Shown here: positions 1,603 through 21,032 of the stretch, in pieces
Layout of the letters: every line of letters starts with the position of its first letter
Numbering within the stretch: the first letter of the stretch is position 1
Source of the DNA: Magallana gigas
Lineage: Eukaryota
NCBI RefSeq assembly: GCF_963853765.1
Contig: NC_088854.1
Coordinates: forward strand, 56,606,001 to 56,670,000
Length of the DNA stretch: 64,000 nucleotides
Direction of reading: 5' to 3'
The notes under the pieces: model-generated
Told to the model about the DNA's origin: nothing
What the model saw: the letters and a program-made list of their open reading frames with translations, nothing else
Databases searched by the model: none
Program-made: the position numbers and the translations under genes

Positions 1603-2298
1603 TTTTATTTCTAAAATAAAGAACCGAACGGACAAGCCGTAACAATCCGGATCATTTGATAACAAAAGAACTTACGACAAAATATATCTTTACAGTCATG
1701 TCTTATTGACCCCAACGAGTAAAATTTATACAAAACCTTTACATCTTAAATATTTCAATAATATAAGTATGTTGTATTGATATAAGTTCAAACATTTGGT
1801 AGCTAGCATGTTGAACTGAATAATGACTGAGCATTTTCAGTTACTTTGCAAATCGAAAGTTCTTTCGTAAAGCGCAGTCCTCGGGACGTATATAAACTGC
1901 TATATATTATATTTATCAATGCTTAACATTTTTATGAATTCCCAAAGGGAATTTCTTAATCTTTTTTTTTTTTTTACATGGTATGCAACCGTGCGTTTTT
2001 CTCTTTATTTACAATAAACATGTTTGAGAAATTTTCATCACCTGGAATCTTAATTATTACTCACGAGAACGACAAAAACTTGATGTCATTAGTTATAACC
2101 ACAATTAAGGACCGAATATGAACATAAGAACTATAAATTGAAAAAGTTGAAATAAATTATTCTGACATCAGTAGAATATGCTGCATGTCCGATCCTCGGG
2201 ACCATATGAACTGGACATAAACTATAGTCATTTATTTTTATAACAGATTTTAACAATAATTTCCTTTACATGCTTTAGGGGGTTGTACAGCATGTACT

Positions 2299-2301
<3 letters not shown>

Positions 2302-2373
<72 letters not shown>
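2302..2373. repeat. (GA)n microsatellite
   Basis: About 36 uninterrupted GA/AG units. Confidence 0.98.
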
Positions 2374-2376
<3 letters not shown>

Positions 2377-3519
2377 ATATATAATCATTTATATTAAAGA
2401 GAGAGAGAATATATATATTCATTTAAAATTGATGACTTCGGCAAATTTAAAAAATCAATAATTTTTACACTAGACTTTGTTAACGGTCAATGTGCCGTCT
2501 GTTGATTGTTAAGGAATCCTATCTTGTATCTTTTTTAATTTTAATCCATGCAGGAACGCAATATATGTCTTCATGTACCGTGGCATTTAAATGATCTACC
2601 GTAAATCCTTTCATGATAGAATAATTTAATGTCTGTATGTTTGACCACGATTCTGATAGAGAGTTACTCTTGTTGTAAATAAATTATATCCCCTTTTGAG
2701 CACCTCAACCCCAAGCTTTAATACACACCTTAACACTATGTAATGCACATGTATTACTAATTAACTTCAACGCTTTTAAAGCTTTGTTTTTTGTTTTTTT
2801 TAAAGTTTTGTCCATCACAACAACTGTTACAGACCTAATTATATGAAAATGGTATTTCAAAAAGGTATTGTCCAAGGCATATCGATTTTCCAAGAGTGTT
2901 CAAATTAATTCATACGTTGATAGTTTACGGATTTTTTTTTTTTAAAATATTTTTCACTCTTCGCTAATTATAATTAGCACTGATGAGTATTTCTTCAGTG
3001 TTTGCACAGTATGGCACGGCGATTAGTTAACAGGCTGTGTAATGGCTGGATTTGACATGTGTACATAATCAGCTCGTAATTACATGTAGAGGCCATGTGT
3101 CAAATCACGGGGATATAGTAATCAACGGCGGAAAACATTTACCTATAAATCTGAGATCAATGAGTTACTAAAAGACAGAAAGTTACTCGGCATAGAGAGA
3201 AGAGTTTCAGAAATCTTCAAATCCAGCAAATCTGCAAGCACACAGCTCGATTTTCCAATAGTAGCGTAAACGGAAGAAAATAATAACTTCTCCCCGTTGT
3301 GCATAATTCATTATTTGCTATGAATAAACAGTGATTGTGAATGCAGTAGTACAGACAGTGATATCATGTGGTGATTTTGACCGATAATCGGGTGATTGTT
3401 TATGTTTGATCATTGCCCACCAGAGATAAGATTCACGCCCGGATTTGTGGTGGGGAGAGATATCTGATCACCGTAATATCCTTGTAAGTGGATCTGGGAA
3501 AGCCAGAGTCTGGGCAGCC

Positions 3520-6500
3520 ATGTCGAGCCTGTTTTCATGCTTTGGGAAGAAAAGCAAAGTGAAGAGAGGAAACAAAGAGCCCAAGGACAGGAAGGTGAGA
3601 CATCGCTCTTTGGTCTTTATTCGTGTCATTCTGATTTTAACTACAAAAATCATTGGTATTAATTAAGCTTCCAAAGCATCGATTTTTTTCTTTGTGTAAT
3701 TAACAAGTTTATGTTTGTGTACATGATGCGTAAGATGTGTATCTCGTTGTCAAAACTATAGCCAGCAGTTATATGAACATCACCGATATATCCAAAACAT
3801 GTACAATTTATTGGTTTTTCGTAAAACATTTATACCTCGGCTAACAACTTGAGAACGACATCAGCTGACTGGGACATCTTCCGTGACCATGTGCCGGGTT
3901 TTAGTTCGAGTAAATAATGTGCAACCTACACGTGTTGTAAATATGAGTCAAAACAAATAATTTATCGACGGGCTTCACACACAACCTTAAAAATTGTCTT
4001 TTTTTTTTAATTTCTAAAATTTCAATTTTTCGTATTGGGGAACACATTATTGATTTTCTTATTAAGTGTTAATTGGGAGAAAATTATTCCTCGCGATTTT
4101 TGCCTATATTTTTACTAGATAAGTGGAATAAATACGGTAGCGAAACAATCTTGAACGGAAGTCGAATTTAAACGTTCTGGTAACTCGCTGTTGCATGGAT
4201 TAATCCAGATTATGTTTACCGGTCACTAGCTATATTAAATATGCCCAAACCCGGTATATAATTGCTGTAAGAATTAGATAAAAACGGGCATTTAACAGCC
4301 GCATTACGTGCAGTGACCGTGACCTTAAAAAGGGACCGGTTATTAATTCACTAAAACCTTGTTTTTCTCCCAAAACAGAAAGATGCAAAACACAGAGAAC
4401 AGATCCCGGCTCCCATTGAGGACGAACGAAAACCACCGGTAGAGGAAAGTATTCCAGATAAAGCCCAGGTAATTACTTAATTAAGGATAACAATGGATCT
4501 GTATACATTAATAGTGTTAGCATTGCAGTGAGAGGGGTGGGGGGGGGGGGAGGTGGGGGTCGTCGTTCTTGGTAATATTTGAAGTAAGTGTAATGATCAT
4601 GCATTGGCTCAGGAAATTTTATTTTGCACAGATTTATGACCTTAACAGTAAACACTAATTTTGTTATGAGTTGGTAACATGTAAATATCCAGTCACATTA
4701 CAGTCAGTTTGACTTACTTCTATATCCGATGATTAAAATTGTACATAAGCCCAAACAATTTAATAAGCACATCATAATAAATCGTTATTTTGAATTTAGC
4801 AAAATGGGGACGTACATAAAGAGGAGGCGGAAGTGCCACCGCCCGAGGAGACCAGCAGTCCTTTGATTAAGGAGCTGGAAAACAAACTGCAGAAGAGAAG
4901 GGAGAAAAATAGTACGTCTGACGAGCATACAACAGAAGCGAAAGAAAATGAAGTCATCCCACAGCAAGCTAAACAATCGGAACAAACAATTCCTGAGCAA
5001 ATTCCCCCAAAACCCACCCGCTCACAGTCGGAGAAAAAATCCGCTCCCATCGCGGCGGAAAAGAAAGATGCAGAAAGCGATGCACTAGAGAGTCAGGTGG
5101 AAAAGCTACGATCGGAGATCGCACAACTAAGAACAGAGAATATTAAACTAAGAGAAAAGGCGTCCGAGAATGACAAACTCAAGAAAGCACAGACAGAAAA
5201 ATTAGAGCTGGAAGAGAAAGTTAAAAGTCTGGAAGACTTGAACCAACAAATACAGGCGCGAGAAAAGAATATGTCCTCTGAGTACGCAGAGTTAAAGAAA
5301 AAAGTAGCCAAGGAAGAAGATAGGATGAATGACGAAGTACAGGAAAGGTTAGGAATTGCTCTCAAAGAAAGACAAAATATTTTGGCATCGTTCGAGGAGT
5401 TAAGCCAGTTGTGTTGCAAACTTGCCCCTAGACTTGATTCGATCGAGTCAGCAAAAGAGAAACAGAAAACACCGGACGATGTGTTACCGCGCGTGGAAAC
5501 CTTAGGAGAATCCCAGAAAATGGTCAGTAAAGACGTCACAACACTAAGGCACCATCTGGATGAGCTGGAACTTCGTATTATTCGTCTGGAGGTGGATAAA
5601 GACAACATGGAAGATTCAAATGGCGATAAGTTTGCTGCTTTAGAGGATATGAAAAAAGAAAACACTGCTTTGATGGCAAAAATAAAGAAATTGGAAGTGG
5701 AACTGGAGGTGAAGAAATCGAATTTGCTCCGTGTGGAGAACGAGAAATCATTGATGTCATCACAGCTGTCAGTTCTCATGACGGAGGTGGAAAACCTAAA
5801 AAGGAAGATGGATGAGTTGTCGATAGCTCATGGCGAGAAAGAGGCAGAATTGGAGATCTCTGTAAGAAAGCACTCGACGCTGAACGAAGAGATCAAAGTT
5901 CAAGGAATCAAGCTACAAACAATGGCGTCACTTGTCAAAGAAAAGGAAGAAGCGTGCAACAAAGCCGAGAAGAAAATGAGGGAAGCTAAAAAACTTAACG
6001 AGGAACTCATGAAACGGTACGCGATTTTAGATAATGTAGGCAACCTGTACAAAGCACCCGTGAACAATGCGCTATTAATTATTCATTGTAAAGTAACATA
6101 TTTCCGTGTACGAAATAAAACCCGAAAGATGAGTTTTTTTAAAAATGTTCCCTTTTTAATCACAGATTACACGAACAAGAAAAGAAAAGTCCCGCCAAAA
6201 TGAATGGCGCCGCTTCACCAGCTGCGCCTCTAGCAGACGACATGGACCGCATGCGGAAAATATCAGAGCGGTTTGCTGTAGAACTTTACGGAGGTTTGTG
6301 GCGGGAAGCATTTGAAAAGCTCACAACAGTATTTAAAAGGGAGGAGAAGAAATCGCTACAGATACTGATGGACTTCTGCACGGTAATCTTCATACGCCCA
6401 AACATAAGATGTAAATTTTCTAAAAATATCAGTAATTTTCCAAAGGCTTCCATAGACAGCGTAAACCAACATTGTGATCTCTATTGTTTCAGGAGGCGTA

Positions 6501-7536
6501 CCTTCATTGCCGACGGACGGCCAGGCAACAGTTGGACTCCGTGTACTCTCTACTGACGAACCCTTCCGTCACTCACGGACGTAACAGCATCAGCAGACGA
6601 TCGCCGTCATCTGTAAGTATCAATACTGATTTCTTTTCGATTCGATTTCTTCCTTCTTGTCGTGTTGTTATTGATGTTGTTATTGTTGTTGTTGTGATTT
6701 AAACTCTTTTATAAAATCTTGTTTTAGAATATATATAAGAATATTATTATACAGAAACAGTCGACGCCCGAGAATATTCCGCCAAGTCTACGTCACCAGA
6801 TTGTACAGTTCCGCAAGGATCCATCCAGGGACTTCCTTGATAGCTTATACGATGTAAGATCCCTAGGTTTACCTTGTTTAAACCCAGTTTTAGTCTACCA
6901 ATAACAGAACCGACTTTATTACATGTAATTATTTTAAAAGTTGTCTGGATTACACTAGGGCTGAATACGGTAGCATACAATCAGTACATAGTTATCAATT
7001 TTGCAACTGTATTAAAAATCATATTGGTTTTTGTATTGCATCAGGGGAATTTAAAAGTACATGTTCTAAAATGTAATATATAAGGGAAAAAATTCTGATC
7101 CACAAAGATAAGAAGGGCAGACTAACTAATTTTTAGAACAAACAAAATTTTCGAAATGTAGAAACCATTTCACTTTGATTATCAGCATAACTTGGAATTC
7201 TCATTGAATGCTTTTGATTTCCAGGATTTCCTGAGTGTGTTAGACTTCCAGAAGTCCCGTCACCTAAGAAGCTTCCACATGAAGGAAGTAAAGGACATTG
7301 CCCCCTACATCACCAGGTGTCTTGCCATTAGCTGGGAGATGGTGGTCCAGGACCCACCCATGTACCTGCAGTTCAAAGTTCGGCACGGAACACCCGTGGA
7401 TCGGGAAAAGTACAACTTTTACACCACAGAAGGGGATGTGGTAGACTATCTTGTGTGGCCCGCCGTTTTGAGGGAGGAAAATGGCGCGGTGCTTCAGAAA
7501 GGGAAAGTGCAGGCTATCTCCCCTAGGCCGGTGTAA
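3520..7536 (+). CDS. Coiled-coil protein with Mieap/SPATA18-like C-terminal domain, 7 exons (3520-3594, 4379-4468, 4800-6016, 6166-6382, 6493-6612, 6755-6853, 7225-7536), 709 aa
   Basis: All introns are GT-AG and phase-consistent (2130 nt). Exon 3 is a ~400-aa E/K-rich heptad region. The C-terminus has KISERFAVELYGGLWREAFEKL ... YITRCLAISWEMVVQDPPM ... YTTEGDVVDYLVWPAV ... GAVLQKG, the pattern of the MIEAP domain family. Confidence 0.78.
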
Positions 7537-9088
7537 TGGTCCCAATGATGTTGGGTCGTTCTATTGCAAATCAAAGATTGACAAGGGTCCACGTTAACAT
7601 TTATTTTTTAACCCTGCTAATAGGGATTGTTCAGGAAGTCGCCATTTTGATCAATGCTTGGCATTTAGTTTTTCCTTAACAATGACGTCATGTTGTATTG
7701 TAATTTATTTTAAGTCTTCGATTTTTTAATTTGTTGTTTTACATGCATTGTGTTGACCAATACAGAGCCCAGTCTGTACCACTGCCTTCTAATAGTCGTA
7801 TTACAGATCTGGATCTTTTATAAAGAAAAGGGTCTTTTGAGATGTAAATATTTTTTTTGAGTGTTTATTGCATTAAGGCAAAGATTTTTATTATATTCAG
7901 AAAATGTCGGACTCGTCTCGCTTGTTTTAGTTCTTGTTTTTAAATTAGTATTTATTCATCTTTTATTTGTTTTTGCATTTAATATACTAACTCAGCACAC
8001 AAAATAGATGGGTAAGGTGTTTTTTACGAAGAGGGTGAAGAAATCAATTGTTTAATGATGCTCACGCTTTGTCTAGTCACCGGATGTTAACAGCGTCCGG
8101 TTGTCGTAATTCTAGTATTACACTAAATGCAATACTTAACGATATTTTTATCTAATTGGTGCCATTTCCCCGGAGATTTTATTTTACACCGTATAACTAT
8201 ATAGAAGTAGAGACTACCATCATATATTATTTGATAAGGAATCCATTTATCCTGTGGTTTTTAGGACGTTTATTTGTAGTAATTTTTATTGAGTGTTTTT
8301 CACTCCCTTTCCATTAGATGGTTGGATGAGTTGTATCAGTTGTTAGTGACATTTTTTTTGCTTGGCATTTTGCGGTTGTGTATATCCTGTACATCTGTTG
8401 TGTCTATTTTGTTGTTGAGAATAAAATGATGTCAAAGTATATTGCTTTGTGGATTTATATTTAATGGAATTTCTAACAGAAAAAAGTATACATAAAAATA
8501 AATAAATATACATGTAATATTCAATGTTTGAGATTAAGAGGCGCATTTTCATAATTAACATCATTAATTGAACATAAAGCAAAACATATTTTTAGATACT
8601 AGTAGTTTAAACAAATGTCTTATTGCCATAGGTGGTTAATTTTACCATTGATTCTTATGGAACATGAAATTGACGGGTAAGTTTTTTTTTTTTTTTTTTT
8701 TTTTTTATAAGACTGGTAATTGCTCATCGAGTTGCTTTCTTTAAATGAGGTTGGATAGAAAACAAATCAAATCATGAGAAACAAATCGACCACTGTACAT
8801 GTATCGTTACATCGAGAAAAAAAAGGTAAGTTAAATGTGCTACAAAAAGCACCGCTGGGTTCGGGCCTCTGAGGCCAACAGGTCGCGTTCGTTTGATGGG
8901 ATTTTTTTCTTTCATCTTTCATTTTTCCCGTTCAACTTTTCTTGCCCCTTCTCTTCCTAAAGGCGATTGGACTGTGAACATGCATATAAAGTAGAATCGG
9001 CCTTTACTAGAAGGGCCTCTCTATCTGTGCTCTGATTAGAGGTAATAATCCCACCCTTATGTTAACAGAGATCTCAATAATCATTGAA

Positions 9089-19449: not shown

Positions 19450-19880
19450 TGTAACAGTCATCAGTCTCATCAACTTGGACTTGGAACACAAGGCCTCTGG
19501 CATAGTCTGCCAGCGGATTGATCCAACTACTGTCAGAGATCGACCTGATAAGTATGTATATTAGCTATGTAAATTGACTAACATGCAGTTATAAGTACAT
19601 GCACCTGTGAACACATTGAGTTATTCCTCCTCTTGGTAGAAATTATTGATAGTCCTCAAGTTTATAAGTAAAATTCTATGAGTGGAGGAATGCAGCGTGA
19701 GGCATTCTCCTAAGTGGTTATGTTCTGTTGGCTTAACTCTGCTTAAAGGTAACAGGCTGATAATTTAAGGTGAAATCGATGTGAAGTCTCAACCAGGACT
19801 CGAACCCAGGGCCTTTGGCATACTATGCCAGCGCTTTCACCACTCAGCTGTGAGATTTGATATTTTGACTACCAGTCACA
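19450..19880 (-). mobile_element. Degenerate pair of ~133-bp tRNA-like LTR-type repeats (19450-19583 and 19748-19880)
   Basis: On the minus strand both contain ...GCTGGCA(T/G)A(G/C)TATGCCA(A/G)AGGCC.TG.GTTC(G/C)A(A)GTCC (B box; intact GGTTCGAGTCC in the right copy). The right copy starts TGTGAC and the left copy ends GTTACA. A PPT-like GAGGAGGAA lies between them. No clean PBS or TSD. Confidence 0.5.
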
Positions 19881-20159
19881 CACCTATTAAGCCGATGGCA
19901 ATAAATTTTCTGAATGTCAGATGACACTACCCAACTTTTGATAATCTTATATAATTCTACTCTCACTTCCTCACAAACTTTATTAAAGATTTCCATAATG
20001 ACATTGATCAATCTTTTGGTCTTATATTACTGAGCTATTTTCAAATATGTAGAAAATAAAAGATTTTCTTTCTATTTTCGTATTTGATTTCACATGAAAA
20101 AATCCTGTTACCTGGTGTTTTATATACATGTGTGACGGTCAGACCGGTTCAAATACCTG

Positions 20160-20231
20160 CGCCAGATAGCTCAGTTGGTAGAGCACCTGACTAGAGGTTC
20201 AGGGGGCCCGGGTTTGAAACCTGGTCTGGTC
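20160..20231 (+). pseudogene. tRNA-like sequence (Pol III A/B boxes) inside the 5' LTR
   Basis: A box TAGCTCAGTTGGTAGAGC, D and T arms, 8-nt anticodon loop. B box is mutated here (GGTTTGAAACC). Not a functional tRNA. Confidence 0.85.
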
Positions 20232-20389
20232 CGTCATTATTTCTCCCATCGCTTTACATTTGGTGCCGTGACCAACCCCTGGAACTGACAGGTGAACTCC
20301 TGCCAGGGGAAGAGTCTGGGGGTGATCTCTGGGGACGAAGATCATTTAAGGGCGGAGGAATGTGATTGTCAGACCGGTTTGAATACCGG

Positions 20390-20461
20390 CGCCAGATAGC
20401 TCAGTTGGTAGAGCACCTGACTAGAGATTCAGGGGGCCCGGGTTCGAAACCCGGTCTGGTC
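20390..20461 (+). pseudogene. tRNA-like sequence (Pol III A/B boxes) inside the 3' LTR
   Basis: A box TAGCTCAGTTGGTAGAGC and intact B box GGTTCGAAACC. Stems CCTGA/TCAGG and CCGGG/CCCGG. The anticodon loop is 8 nt (CTAGAGAT) and the first acceptor pair is mismatched. Confidence 0.85.
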
Positions 20462-21032
20462 CGTCATTATTTCTCCCATCCCGTTACACATGACTGTGTG
20501 TTAATTAAAATTTATAAGATGAGGTTGAGAACATTTAACTATTCAAACATCTATATATATACCGGTACTTTTCCTGTGAAATGATGGGGAATTTGGATAC
20601 ATTTCATTTAATTGTTTACAAAAATAAAACAACTTTTTGATTATTTTATCAATTTGTATTGAATTTAAATGTTGGGTTAAAACACAATTTTTCATGTTAT
20701 AATTTAAGAATTTAATACCGGTACCTTTTAAATTTGAGCTGTAAGTATGATTACTTTTCATTTATTAGATTTAATTGACGTAAGTAAAGATTGGCATTGG
20801 GCTGAGTGCATGCATGACTGTCATCTTCACACTATGGAGCTCGGGTGACGAGGCTAAGCATGCATGTGTATAAAATCATGATGATATTTGAACGATCTGC
20901 ACTTTGGTCATATAGAAATTCTCATGAAAACTCATTAACCTTTATGATGATTAGTCATGTGCATCGAGTCCATTAATTATTATTAAGTCATGAAATTTTT
21001 ACAGAGTCTCTGATCACATATATACTGCCAAC

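Follow-up and report, generated by a model that had tools for sequence, protein, structure and literature searches.

What is a 358-bp unit that carries a tRNA-like sequence in each of its two ends and is too short inside for a gag or pol gene, and by what means could it have moved? This question is raised by positions 20131-20488 of a 64,000-nucleotide stretch of the Magallana gigas genome (GCF_963853765.1, contig NC_088854.1, positions 56,606,001 to 56,670,000 of the forward strand), which as a whole is referred to as the window below. A preliminary description, made from the letters alone, had presented the locus as a complete long terminal repeat (LTR) retroelement with LTRs built around a tRNA gene, had called it Ajax-like and had left it unsaid whether the family was catalogued. 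With high confidence, the locus can be identified as one old, decayed insertion of Helenus-2C_CGi, a non-coding terminal-repeat retrotransposon in miniature (TRIM; class TRIMp3) whose 128-bp LTRs are placed around a tRNA-derived unit. The family, its 4-bp target site duplication (TSD), its tRNA-His primer binding site (PBS) and its likely dependence on Gypsy are already known from a publication of 2024 (PMC10886601), and with the class, the oyster family and the main features in print the locus has little importance as a discovery. What goes beyond the published account is one aberrant insertion that joins Helenus-2C to a tRNA-His copy and Gypsy-type sequence, together with two Gypsy-type lineages that share signals with Helenus-2C.

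Structure and identity of the element

Read directly from the sequence, positions 20131-20488 are an LTR-internal-LTR element of 358 bp, with all of its features on the forward strand. The two LTRs of 128 nt each, which belong to the same repeat family (D1), lie at 20131-20258 (5′ LTR, TGTGAC...TTTACA, the more decayed of the pair) and at 20361-20488 (3′ LTR, TGTGAT...GTTACA). They match at 118 of 128 positions (92%), and both begin with TGTGA and end with TTACA. The element is enclosed by two identical copies of the tetranucleotide CATG, at 20127-20130 on the left and 20489-20492 on the right. The non-coding internal region between the LTRs (20259-20360, 102 nt) opens with TT, followed by the PBS TGGTGCCGTGACCA (20261-20274), which is complementary over its 14 nt to the 3′ end of the mature tRNA-His from the same genome, including the CCA tail. 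It closes with the purine run AAGGGCGGAGGAA of the polypurine tract (PPT; 20348-20360), which is broken by one C and directly precedes the 3′ LTR; in young copies of the family this tract reads AAGGGGGGAGGAA. The complete element with its TG...CA repeats, the PBS, the PPT, the CATG duplication and the short non-coding interior had all been named in the preliminary description, and each of them was found at the expected place. Its view that the combination of a tRNA-His PBS, a PPT and 4-bp TSDs points to Gypsy-type machinery is supported as well.

A tRNA-derived unit with A and B boxes had also been seen in each LTR, and both units are recognized by the Rfam tRNA model RF00005, with 44.3 bits in the 5′ LTR (20160-20232) and 50.5 bits in the 3′ LTR (20390-20462), against a gathering score of 29 bits. 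In the 5′ LTR, the A-box-like sequence TAGCTCAGTTGG lies at 20167-20178 and the B-box-like sequence GGTTTGAAACC at 20211-20221, the latter with a C-to-T change at 20215 within its GGTTCGA core. The corresponding sequences of the 3′ LTR are found at 20397-20408 (A box) and 20441-20451 (B box, GGTTCGAAACC). Both units are called by ARAGORN as well, with an anticodon loop of 8 nt and no isotype assigned, and in the Rfam alignment the first acceptor pair of the unit is mismatched. The suggestion that the donor was a tRNA-Thr(AGU) was not confirmed, as ARAGORN gives no donor isotype for a unit with this 8-nt loop.

Helenus elements are TRIMs that carry a tRNA-derived sequence in their LTRs and are present in pteriomorph bivalves including Crassostrea gigas (Kojima 2024, Biology 13:119, PMC10886601); their TSDs in animals are 4 bp long (PMC10886601). 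Of the features of Helenus, the window element has the short non-coding structure between two LTRs, a tRNA unit in each LTR that contains A and B boxes, the PBS and PPT at the LTR borders and the 4-bp TSD. More specifically, Helenus-2C_CGi is listed with an LTR of 128, an internal part of 101, a total of 357 and a TSD of 4 (Table S1 of PMC10886601), and is placed under the tRNA-His primers in Figure S2 of the same paper. The LTR length is thus identical to that of the window element, the internal part (101 versus 102) and the total (357 versus 358) are one base shorter, and the TSD length, the tRNA-His PBS, the PPT and the termini agree. When compared by eye with the deposited Helenus-2C_CGi sequence (Data S1), the window element has 4 differences among 128 positions in the 3′ LTR and 8 among 128 in the 5′ LTR, with about 5 mismatches and 1 extra base in the interior. 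There is no difference at the family level, the window copy being a mutated individual. The family that was left without a catalogue entry is therefore a catalogued one, in agreement with both the dimensions and the sequence of Helenus-2C_CGi.

Other Helenus members are related to the window family in parts only. Helenus-2_CGi, Helenus-2B_CGi and Helenus-1_CVi (PMC10886601) have in common with it the tRNA-like unit and its odd anticodon arm CTGACTAGAG, the tRNA-His PBS, the type of PPT and a hairpin ahead of the PPT, but differ in the LTR flanks around the tRNA-like unit, with LTRs of 139-162 nt. The interior of Helenus-2B_CGi is, in addition, unlike that of the window family.

Several known elements of similar design were considered and rejected. 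Ajax, after which the element had been named, belongs to the miniature LTR elements as well, and its LTRs carry a promoter of the RNA polymerase III (Pol III) type that derives from a small RNA, but it contains a fragment of 5S rRNA, has 5-bp TSDs and a tRNA-Leu PBS and has been reported only from two nemerteans (PMC10886601). None of these three features is present in the window element, where tRNA, and no 5S rRNA, is the only Rfam match above the gathering score and where the TSD has 4 bp; the tRNA-bearing group that includes bivalves is Helenus (PMC10886601), and the Ajax-like label had to be dropped. Cassandra, a plant TRIM with 5S rRNA in its LTRs that makes transcripts from its Pol III promoter (PMC10886601), follows the same design principle, and both families make tandem arrays of LTR-internal units, but its small RNA is 5S rRNA instead of tRNA, its hosts are plants and its sequence is unrelated. 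The bivalve element biv-TRIM likewise forms arrays and solo repeats, and has terminal repeats of 202-218 bp, an interior of 77-80 bp, the PPT GGGGAGA and a PBS that is not clear (Satovic et al. 2019, PMC6934838). The lengths of its repeats and its unclear PBS make it a different element: the corresponding lengths in the window are 128 and 102, the conserved biv-TRIM segment TGATCCCAAAGGAC does not occur in the window interior, and a tRNA-like unit is not reported for biv-TRIM (PMC6934838). Finally, a tRNA-derived short interspersed nuclear element (SINE) of the SINE2 type, with its single tRNA head and a 3′ tail of the long interspersed nuclear element (LINE) type, does not fit two LTRs, a PBS, a PPT and fixed 4-bp TSDs.

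Dispersal of the family and decay of the window copy

The preliminary description had proposed that other copies and their TSDs be looked for, and the absence of such copies would have spoken against its reading. In the genome that was searched (564 Mb; 29 contigs, of which ten are large), 1310 first-look candidates yielded many full-length matches at 90-96% identity, spread across all ten large contigs, and most of the other copies compared have an interior with 92-95% identity to that of the window copy. Among 24 non-redundant copies or arrays, 22 are bounded by a perfect 4-bp TSD, all of these being different from each other; in the remaining two, 3 of the 4 positions agree. At several loci, LTR-I-LTR-I-LTR(-I-LTR) arrays (I, internal region) with a period of 229-230 nt occur, and in arrays with three or four LTRs one duplication bounds the whole array. 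Because nearly every examined copy has its own 4-bp duplication, the family moves by integrase-type insertion, and since several copies have identical LTRs (128 of 128 positions in 9 of the 24 loci), it has been active recently. Motif counts that allowed up to 2 mismatches gave 1055 LTR sites and 506 internal sites, with only 1-2 sites for reversed-pattern controls; the published numbers for Helenus-2C in C. gigas are 1124 LTRs and 402 internal parts (PMC10886601). Helenus-2C is thus a dispersed family that numbers some 1000 LTRs and some 500 internal regions. Copies of a recently active family may serve as insertion markers in oysters.

Two groups of copies have flanks in common. Three copies on different chromosomes (G000:C10:6684527, C3:43535910 and C7:16590537), one of them a three-LTR array, have their flanks and a TCTC duplication in common; either a host repeat has carried the element along or the site is a preferred target. 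Two further three-LTR arrays (G000:C7:52770514-52771087 and 52741910-52742483), 28.6 kb apart, are alike in structure and in their 10-nt flanks, and one interior of each is shortened to 89 nt, which suggests a recent segmental duplication.

The state of the window copy was scored against L006, a young copy with identical LTRs. Relative to it, the 5′ LTR of the window copy has 7 differences, 5 of which are at CpG sites, and the 3′ LTR has 3, all at CpG sites. The 10 differences between the two LTRs of the window copy (8 at CpG sites) correspond to a Kimura two-parameter (K2P) distance of 0.083, and as 8 of the 10 changes are at CpG sites, this raw divergence overstates the age of the insertion. 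The changes fall on functional sites. In the 5′ LTR, the B box has gone from GGTTCGA to GGTTTGA, and both LTRs are altered at their inner tips; within the interior, a second predicted hairpin is changed in its stem and the PPT at one G. With the B box, LTR tips, hairpin and PPT all mutated, mostly by CpG decay, the window copy is probably inert.

Support for priming by tRNA-His and candidate helper elements

Traces of reverse transcription are preserved at two loci. The first, L066, contains a complex insertion without TSD (5888-8961, corresponding to G000:C8:40609888-40612961). It starts with an LTR-I-LTR-I-LTR array of Helenus-2C (5888-6482), which is followed by TT and, directly adjoining at 6485-6554, by the reverse complement of tRNA-His nucleotides 5-73 plus CCA, as identified by ARAGORN, Rfam and the sequence itself. 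At least 11 genomic tRNA-His genes match this tRNA copy at 99%, but they are followed by GTG and not by CCA; the template of the copy was therefore a mature tRNA. At the second locus, L069 (4593-4730, reverse strand; G000:C4:19389593-19389730), a solo Helenus-2C LTR, truncated by 8 nt at its start, precedes TT and a PBS of 18 nt; this PBS is an exact match to tRNA-His (ending in ...ACCAGGAT) and departs from that of the family (...ACCAACCC). A 1-methyladenosine (m1A) at tRNA position 58 normally stops the reverse transcriptase, and 18 nt is the stretch up to position 58; the L069 fragment looks like plus-strand strong-stop DNA that became inserted. Priming of Helenus-2C reverse transcription by mature, CCA-tailed tRNA-His is strongly supported by these two fossils, one with the LTR and a nearly complete tRNA, the other with the LTR and 18 nt. 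The tRNA-His genes themselves are clustered in the genome (G000:C3:8089514-8112071, C3:52699924-52712689 and C7:7969297-8035279), and one cluster (L078) has a tRNA-Gln gene at a distance of 0.9 kb.

An element with an interior of 102 nt depends on proteins from elsewhere, and these would be supplied in trans by Ty3/Gypsy-type elements of the same genome. The published suggestion of a helper rests on Gypsy-39_CGi, with which Helenus shares only the PBS region (PMC10886601). The PBS alone does not discriminate a helper, because the 73 exact matches to the tRNA-His PBS in the genome span at least eight unrelated LTR ends. When an LTR end in TTACA was required in addition, two non-Helenus lineages were left, and a comparison of the PPTs kept L067 and added L072. 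The candidate L070 was rejected, as it has only the PBS and the TTACA end in common with Helenus-2C and a different PPT. Candidates for the Gypsy element with the same PBS and termini that the preliminary description had proposed to look for come from two lineages. Both have the tRNA-His PBS, TGT...ACA termini and the TTTAAGGRGGGAGGAA polypurine tract in common with Helenus-2C.

The two lineages resemble Helenus-2C in different ways. L067 has LTRs of 1025 and 1023 nt that are identical except for this two-base length difference and read TGTAAC...CCGGTTACA (termini TGTAAC...GGTTACA). Its TSD is CAAT, the 4-bp duplication of the Gypsy-type candidates having been checked in L067 only. It carries a tRNA-His PBS of 18-19 nt, a gag open reading frame (ORF) with a zinc knuckle and a pol ORF in the order protease, reverse transcriptase, RNase H and integrase, which is the order of Ty3/Gypsy. 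Its PPT, TTTAAGGAGGGAGGAA, is that of the published Helenus-2_CGi and is one base off the PPT of Helenus-2C. In L072, the context of the PBS is like that of Gypsy-39_CGi, and a stretch of 20 nt across the PPT and the start of the LTR is identical in the young Helenus-2C copy L006. Three further loci, L044, L045 and L046 (G000:C1:52987995, 62763439 and 63398141), show a PPT of the type RAAGGGGGGAGGAA directly before an LTR that starts with TGTGATAAAAC; this LTR family may also belong to the Gypsy-type clade that has signals in common with Helenus-2.

The remainder of the L066 insertion brings the two kinds of element together. The tRNA copy is followed by 8 filler nucleotides and then by antisense sequence of the L067 type (4298..1996), and the insertion ends with a forward repeat of L067-type positions 1873-2010, as in a snap-back. 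This repeat starts about 20-30 nt past a TATA-like box, that is, where the 5′ end of the RNA would be expected. The insertion might be one continuous aberrant product of reverse transcription, in which Helenus-2C plus-strand DNA copied the entire tRNA-His primer, jumped to an L067-type RNA, reached the 5′ end of that RNA and snapped back; this reading is tentative, and the balance tips slightly against it. If it is true, L066 is physical evidence of Helenus-2C RNA and Gypsy RNA in one particle and names the helper of an animal TRIM with a tRNA promoter, for which the 2024 paper had suggested a helper only from the similarity of the Gypsy-39_CGi PBS. The fossils of complementary DNA (cDNA) offer support at the sequence level for tRNA-His priming and a concrete candidate for the helper lineage, and together with this candidate they could guide a test of Pol III transcription of such elements.

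Transcription and the internal region

The RNA that serves as template would, judging from conservation, be started by Pol III at the A and B boxes of the 5′ LTR. Specifically, the tRNA-like unit, including the cores of the A and B boxes and the odd 8-nt loop, is common to Helenus-2, 2B and 2C when these are compared by eye, whereas the rest of the LTR differs completely. The Pol III function of Helenus is stated to be unvalidated (PMC10886601). Four RNA runs, from poly(A)-selected or random-primed libraries, were aligned to window positions 19800-20800 (1001 letters). Reads of the family are abundant in all four, far above the reads from the flanks, and in the stranded poly(A) run there is an approximately 2.5-fold bias towards the sense strand. 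At window positions 20360-20369, 62 and 46 reads in two of the runs (X21 and X24) enter the LTR from outside; they stem from one Helenus-2C-like copy elsewhere, with an upstream flank ending in ...AATAATTCTTTATATA.

A number of observations weigh against the reading of the locus as a Helenus-2C insertion transcribed by Pol III and mobilized by a Gypsy-type helper. Regarding its identity, the overall agreement with Helenus-2C_CGi of about 94-97% is a count by eye. Regarding the helper, (i) the likeness of Helenus-2C to Gypsy-type elements is confined to the PBS and PPT ends, where it extends over 17-28 nt, (ii) at least two lineages carry these signals and are candidates for the helper, and (iii) L066 is a single case, as no second fossil of an LTR with a whole tRNA was found within 3 mismatches. 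Regarding transcription, (i) 68-85% of the family reads in the four libraries run on into flanks unlike the window, (ii) one Helenus-2C-like copy elsewhere is expressed by read-through from upstream of its LTR and (iii) no clustered RNA starts or ends were seen in these four poly(A) or random-primed libraries, which are poorly suited to short Pol III RNAs. Moreover, runs of four or more T are absent from 36 of 36 LTR variants and from 27 of 29 interiors, but this is not evidence for Pol III, because 52% of composition-matched shuffles lack such runs too (P = 0.52).

These observations leave room for a rival account in which the locus is the same Helenus-2C TRIM, but the template RNA comes from Pol II or from read-through of host genes, with the tRNA-like unit as a relic or with a role in RNA structure or packaging. 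The abundance of family reads in poly(A)-selected and random-primed libraries and their frequent continuation into flanks speak for it, as do the well-expressed copy that is transcribed from upstream of its LTR, the lack of a start cluster at position +1 of the tRNA-like unit and the unvalidated state of Pol III function in the paper itself (PMC10886601). On the other hand, the box cores and the whole tRNA-like unit have been kept across Helenus-2, 2B and 2C (by eye) and the rest of the LTR has not, the stranded library shows a sense bias, Pol III RNAs that are short and not polyadenylated would be lost from libraries of this kind, and the analogous Cassandra does make transcripts from a Pol III promoter (PMC10886601). 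Coming from poly(A)-selected or random-primed libraries, the read data say nothing either way on Pol III. On the whole, this rival is rather unlikely, albeit one with real observations behind it, and initiation by Pol III at the 5′ LTR is the account preferred here.

Two other accounts have virtually no standing. The regular period of the LTR-I-LTR arrays might suggest that a tRNA-derived SINE was duplicated locally in tandem, or that the locus represents a 229-bp satellite by its smallest unit, but this is refuted by the perfect duplications that bound 22 of the 24 copies or arrays (arrays included) at exact TG...CA ends. The PBS and PPT exactly at the LTR borders, the dispersal over all ten large contigs and the L066 fossil with its tRNA primer speak against it too. 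It is equally hard to credit that the tRNA-like units are functional tRNA genes lying in a repeat by chance: both units do exceed the Rfam gathering score, but they have an 8-nt anticodon loop, no ARAGORN isotype and a mismatched first acceptor pair, this unit is found about 1000 times within LTRs, and it has been judged improbable that Helenus codes for a functional tRNA (PMC10886601). The roughly 1000 tRNA-like units of this genome are parts of LTRs, and an annotation of tRNA genes should leave them out.

Between the PBS and the PPT of Helenus-2C, folding predicts two hairpins. The first (window 20276-20309, forward strand) is predicted both in the consensus fold of 25 copies and in the fold of one young copy, and consists of a CCCCTGG...CCAGGGG stem with an inner CAGG/CCTG stem. 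The second (20324-20343, forward strand) stops 4 nt short of the PPT, and two changes weaken it in the window copy; the comparison of the fold with shuffled sequences gives z = -3.75 in the young copy L006 versus z = -1.38 in the window copy. No compensatory pairs (0) were found in the interior across 25 copies, as the family is too uniform, and the hairpins therefore stay predictions. By eye, the stem of the second hairpin is kept through paired changes in the published Helenus-2B and Helenus-1_CVi. A hairpin ahead of the PPT is also predicted, with weak support (z between -1.1 and -2.1), in the three Gypsy-type copies with a tRNA-His PBS that were examined; the predicted sites are L067 9225-9244, L072 4661-4677 and L070 9663-9685, with L006 1642-1669 (reverse strand) as the Helenus-2C counterpart. 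In Helenus-2C and in these three copies, the polypurine run is preceded by a T-rich lead (TTTAAGG or CTTAAG), and the hairpin ends 0-5 nt ahead of this lead. A common hairpin of this kind, predicted strongly only in Helenus-2C, is to be seen as a lead and not as a finding.

The flanks of the window element are AT-rich and non-coding and have a low RNA coverage. About 220 bp upstream, at approximately 19602-19907 on the reverse strand, lies an older fragment of a miniature LTR element in the opposite orientation, comprising a 5′ LTR with a tRNA-like unit (19793-19849, Rfam 31.8 bits), an interior and a PPT-like end. By eye, this fragment resembles the published Helenus-3_CGi, and other copies in the genome match it at 69-84%.

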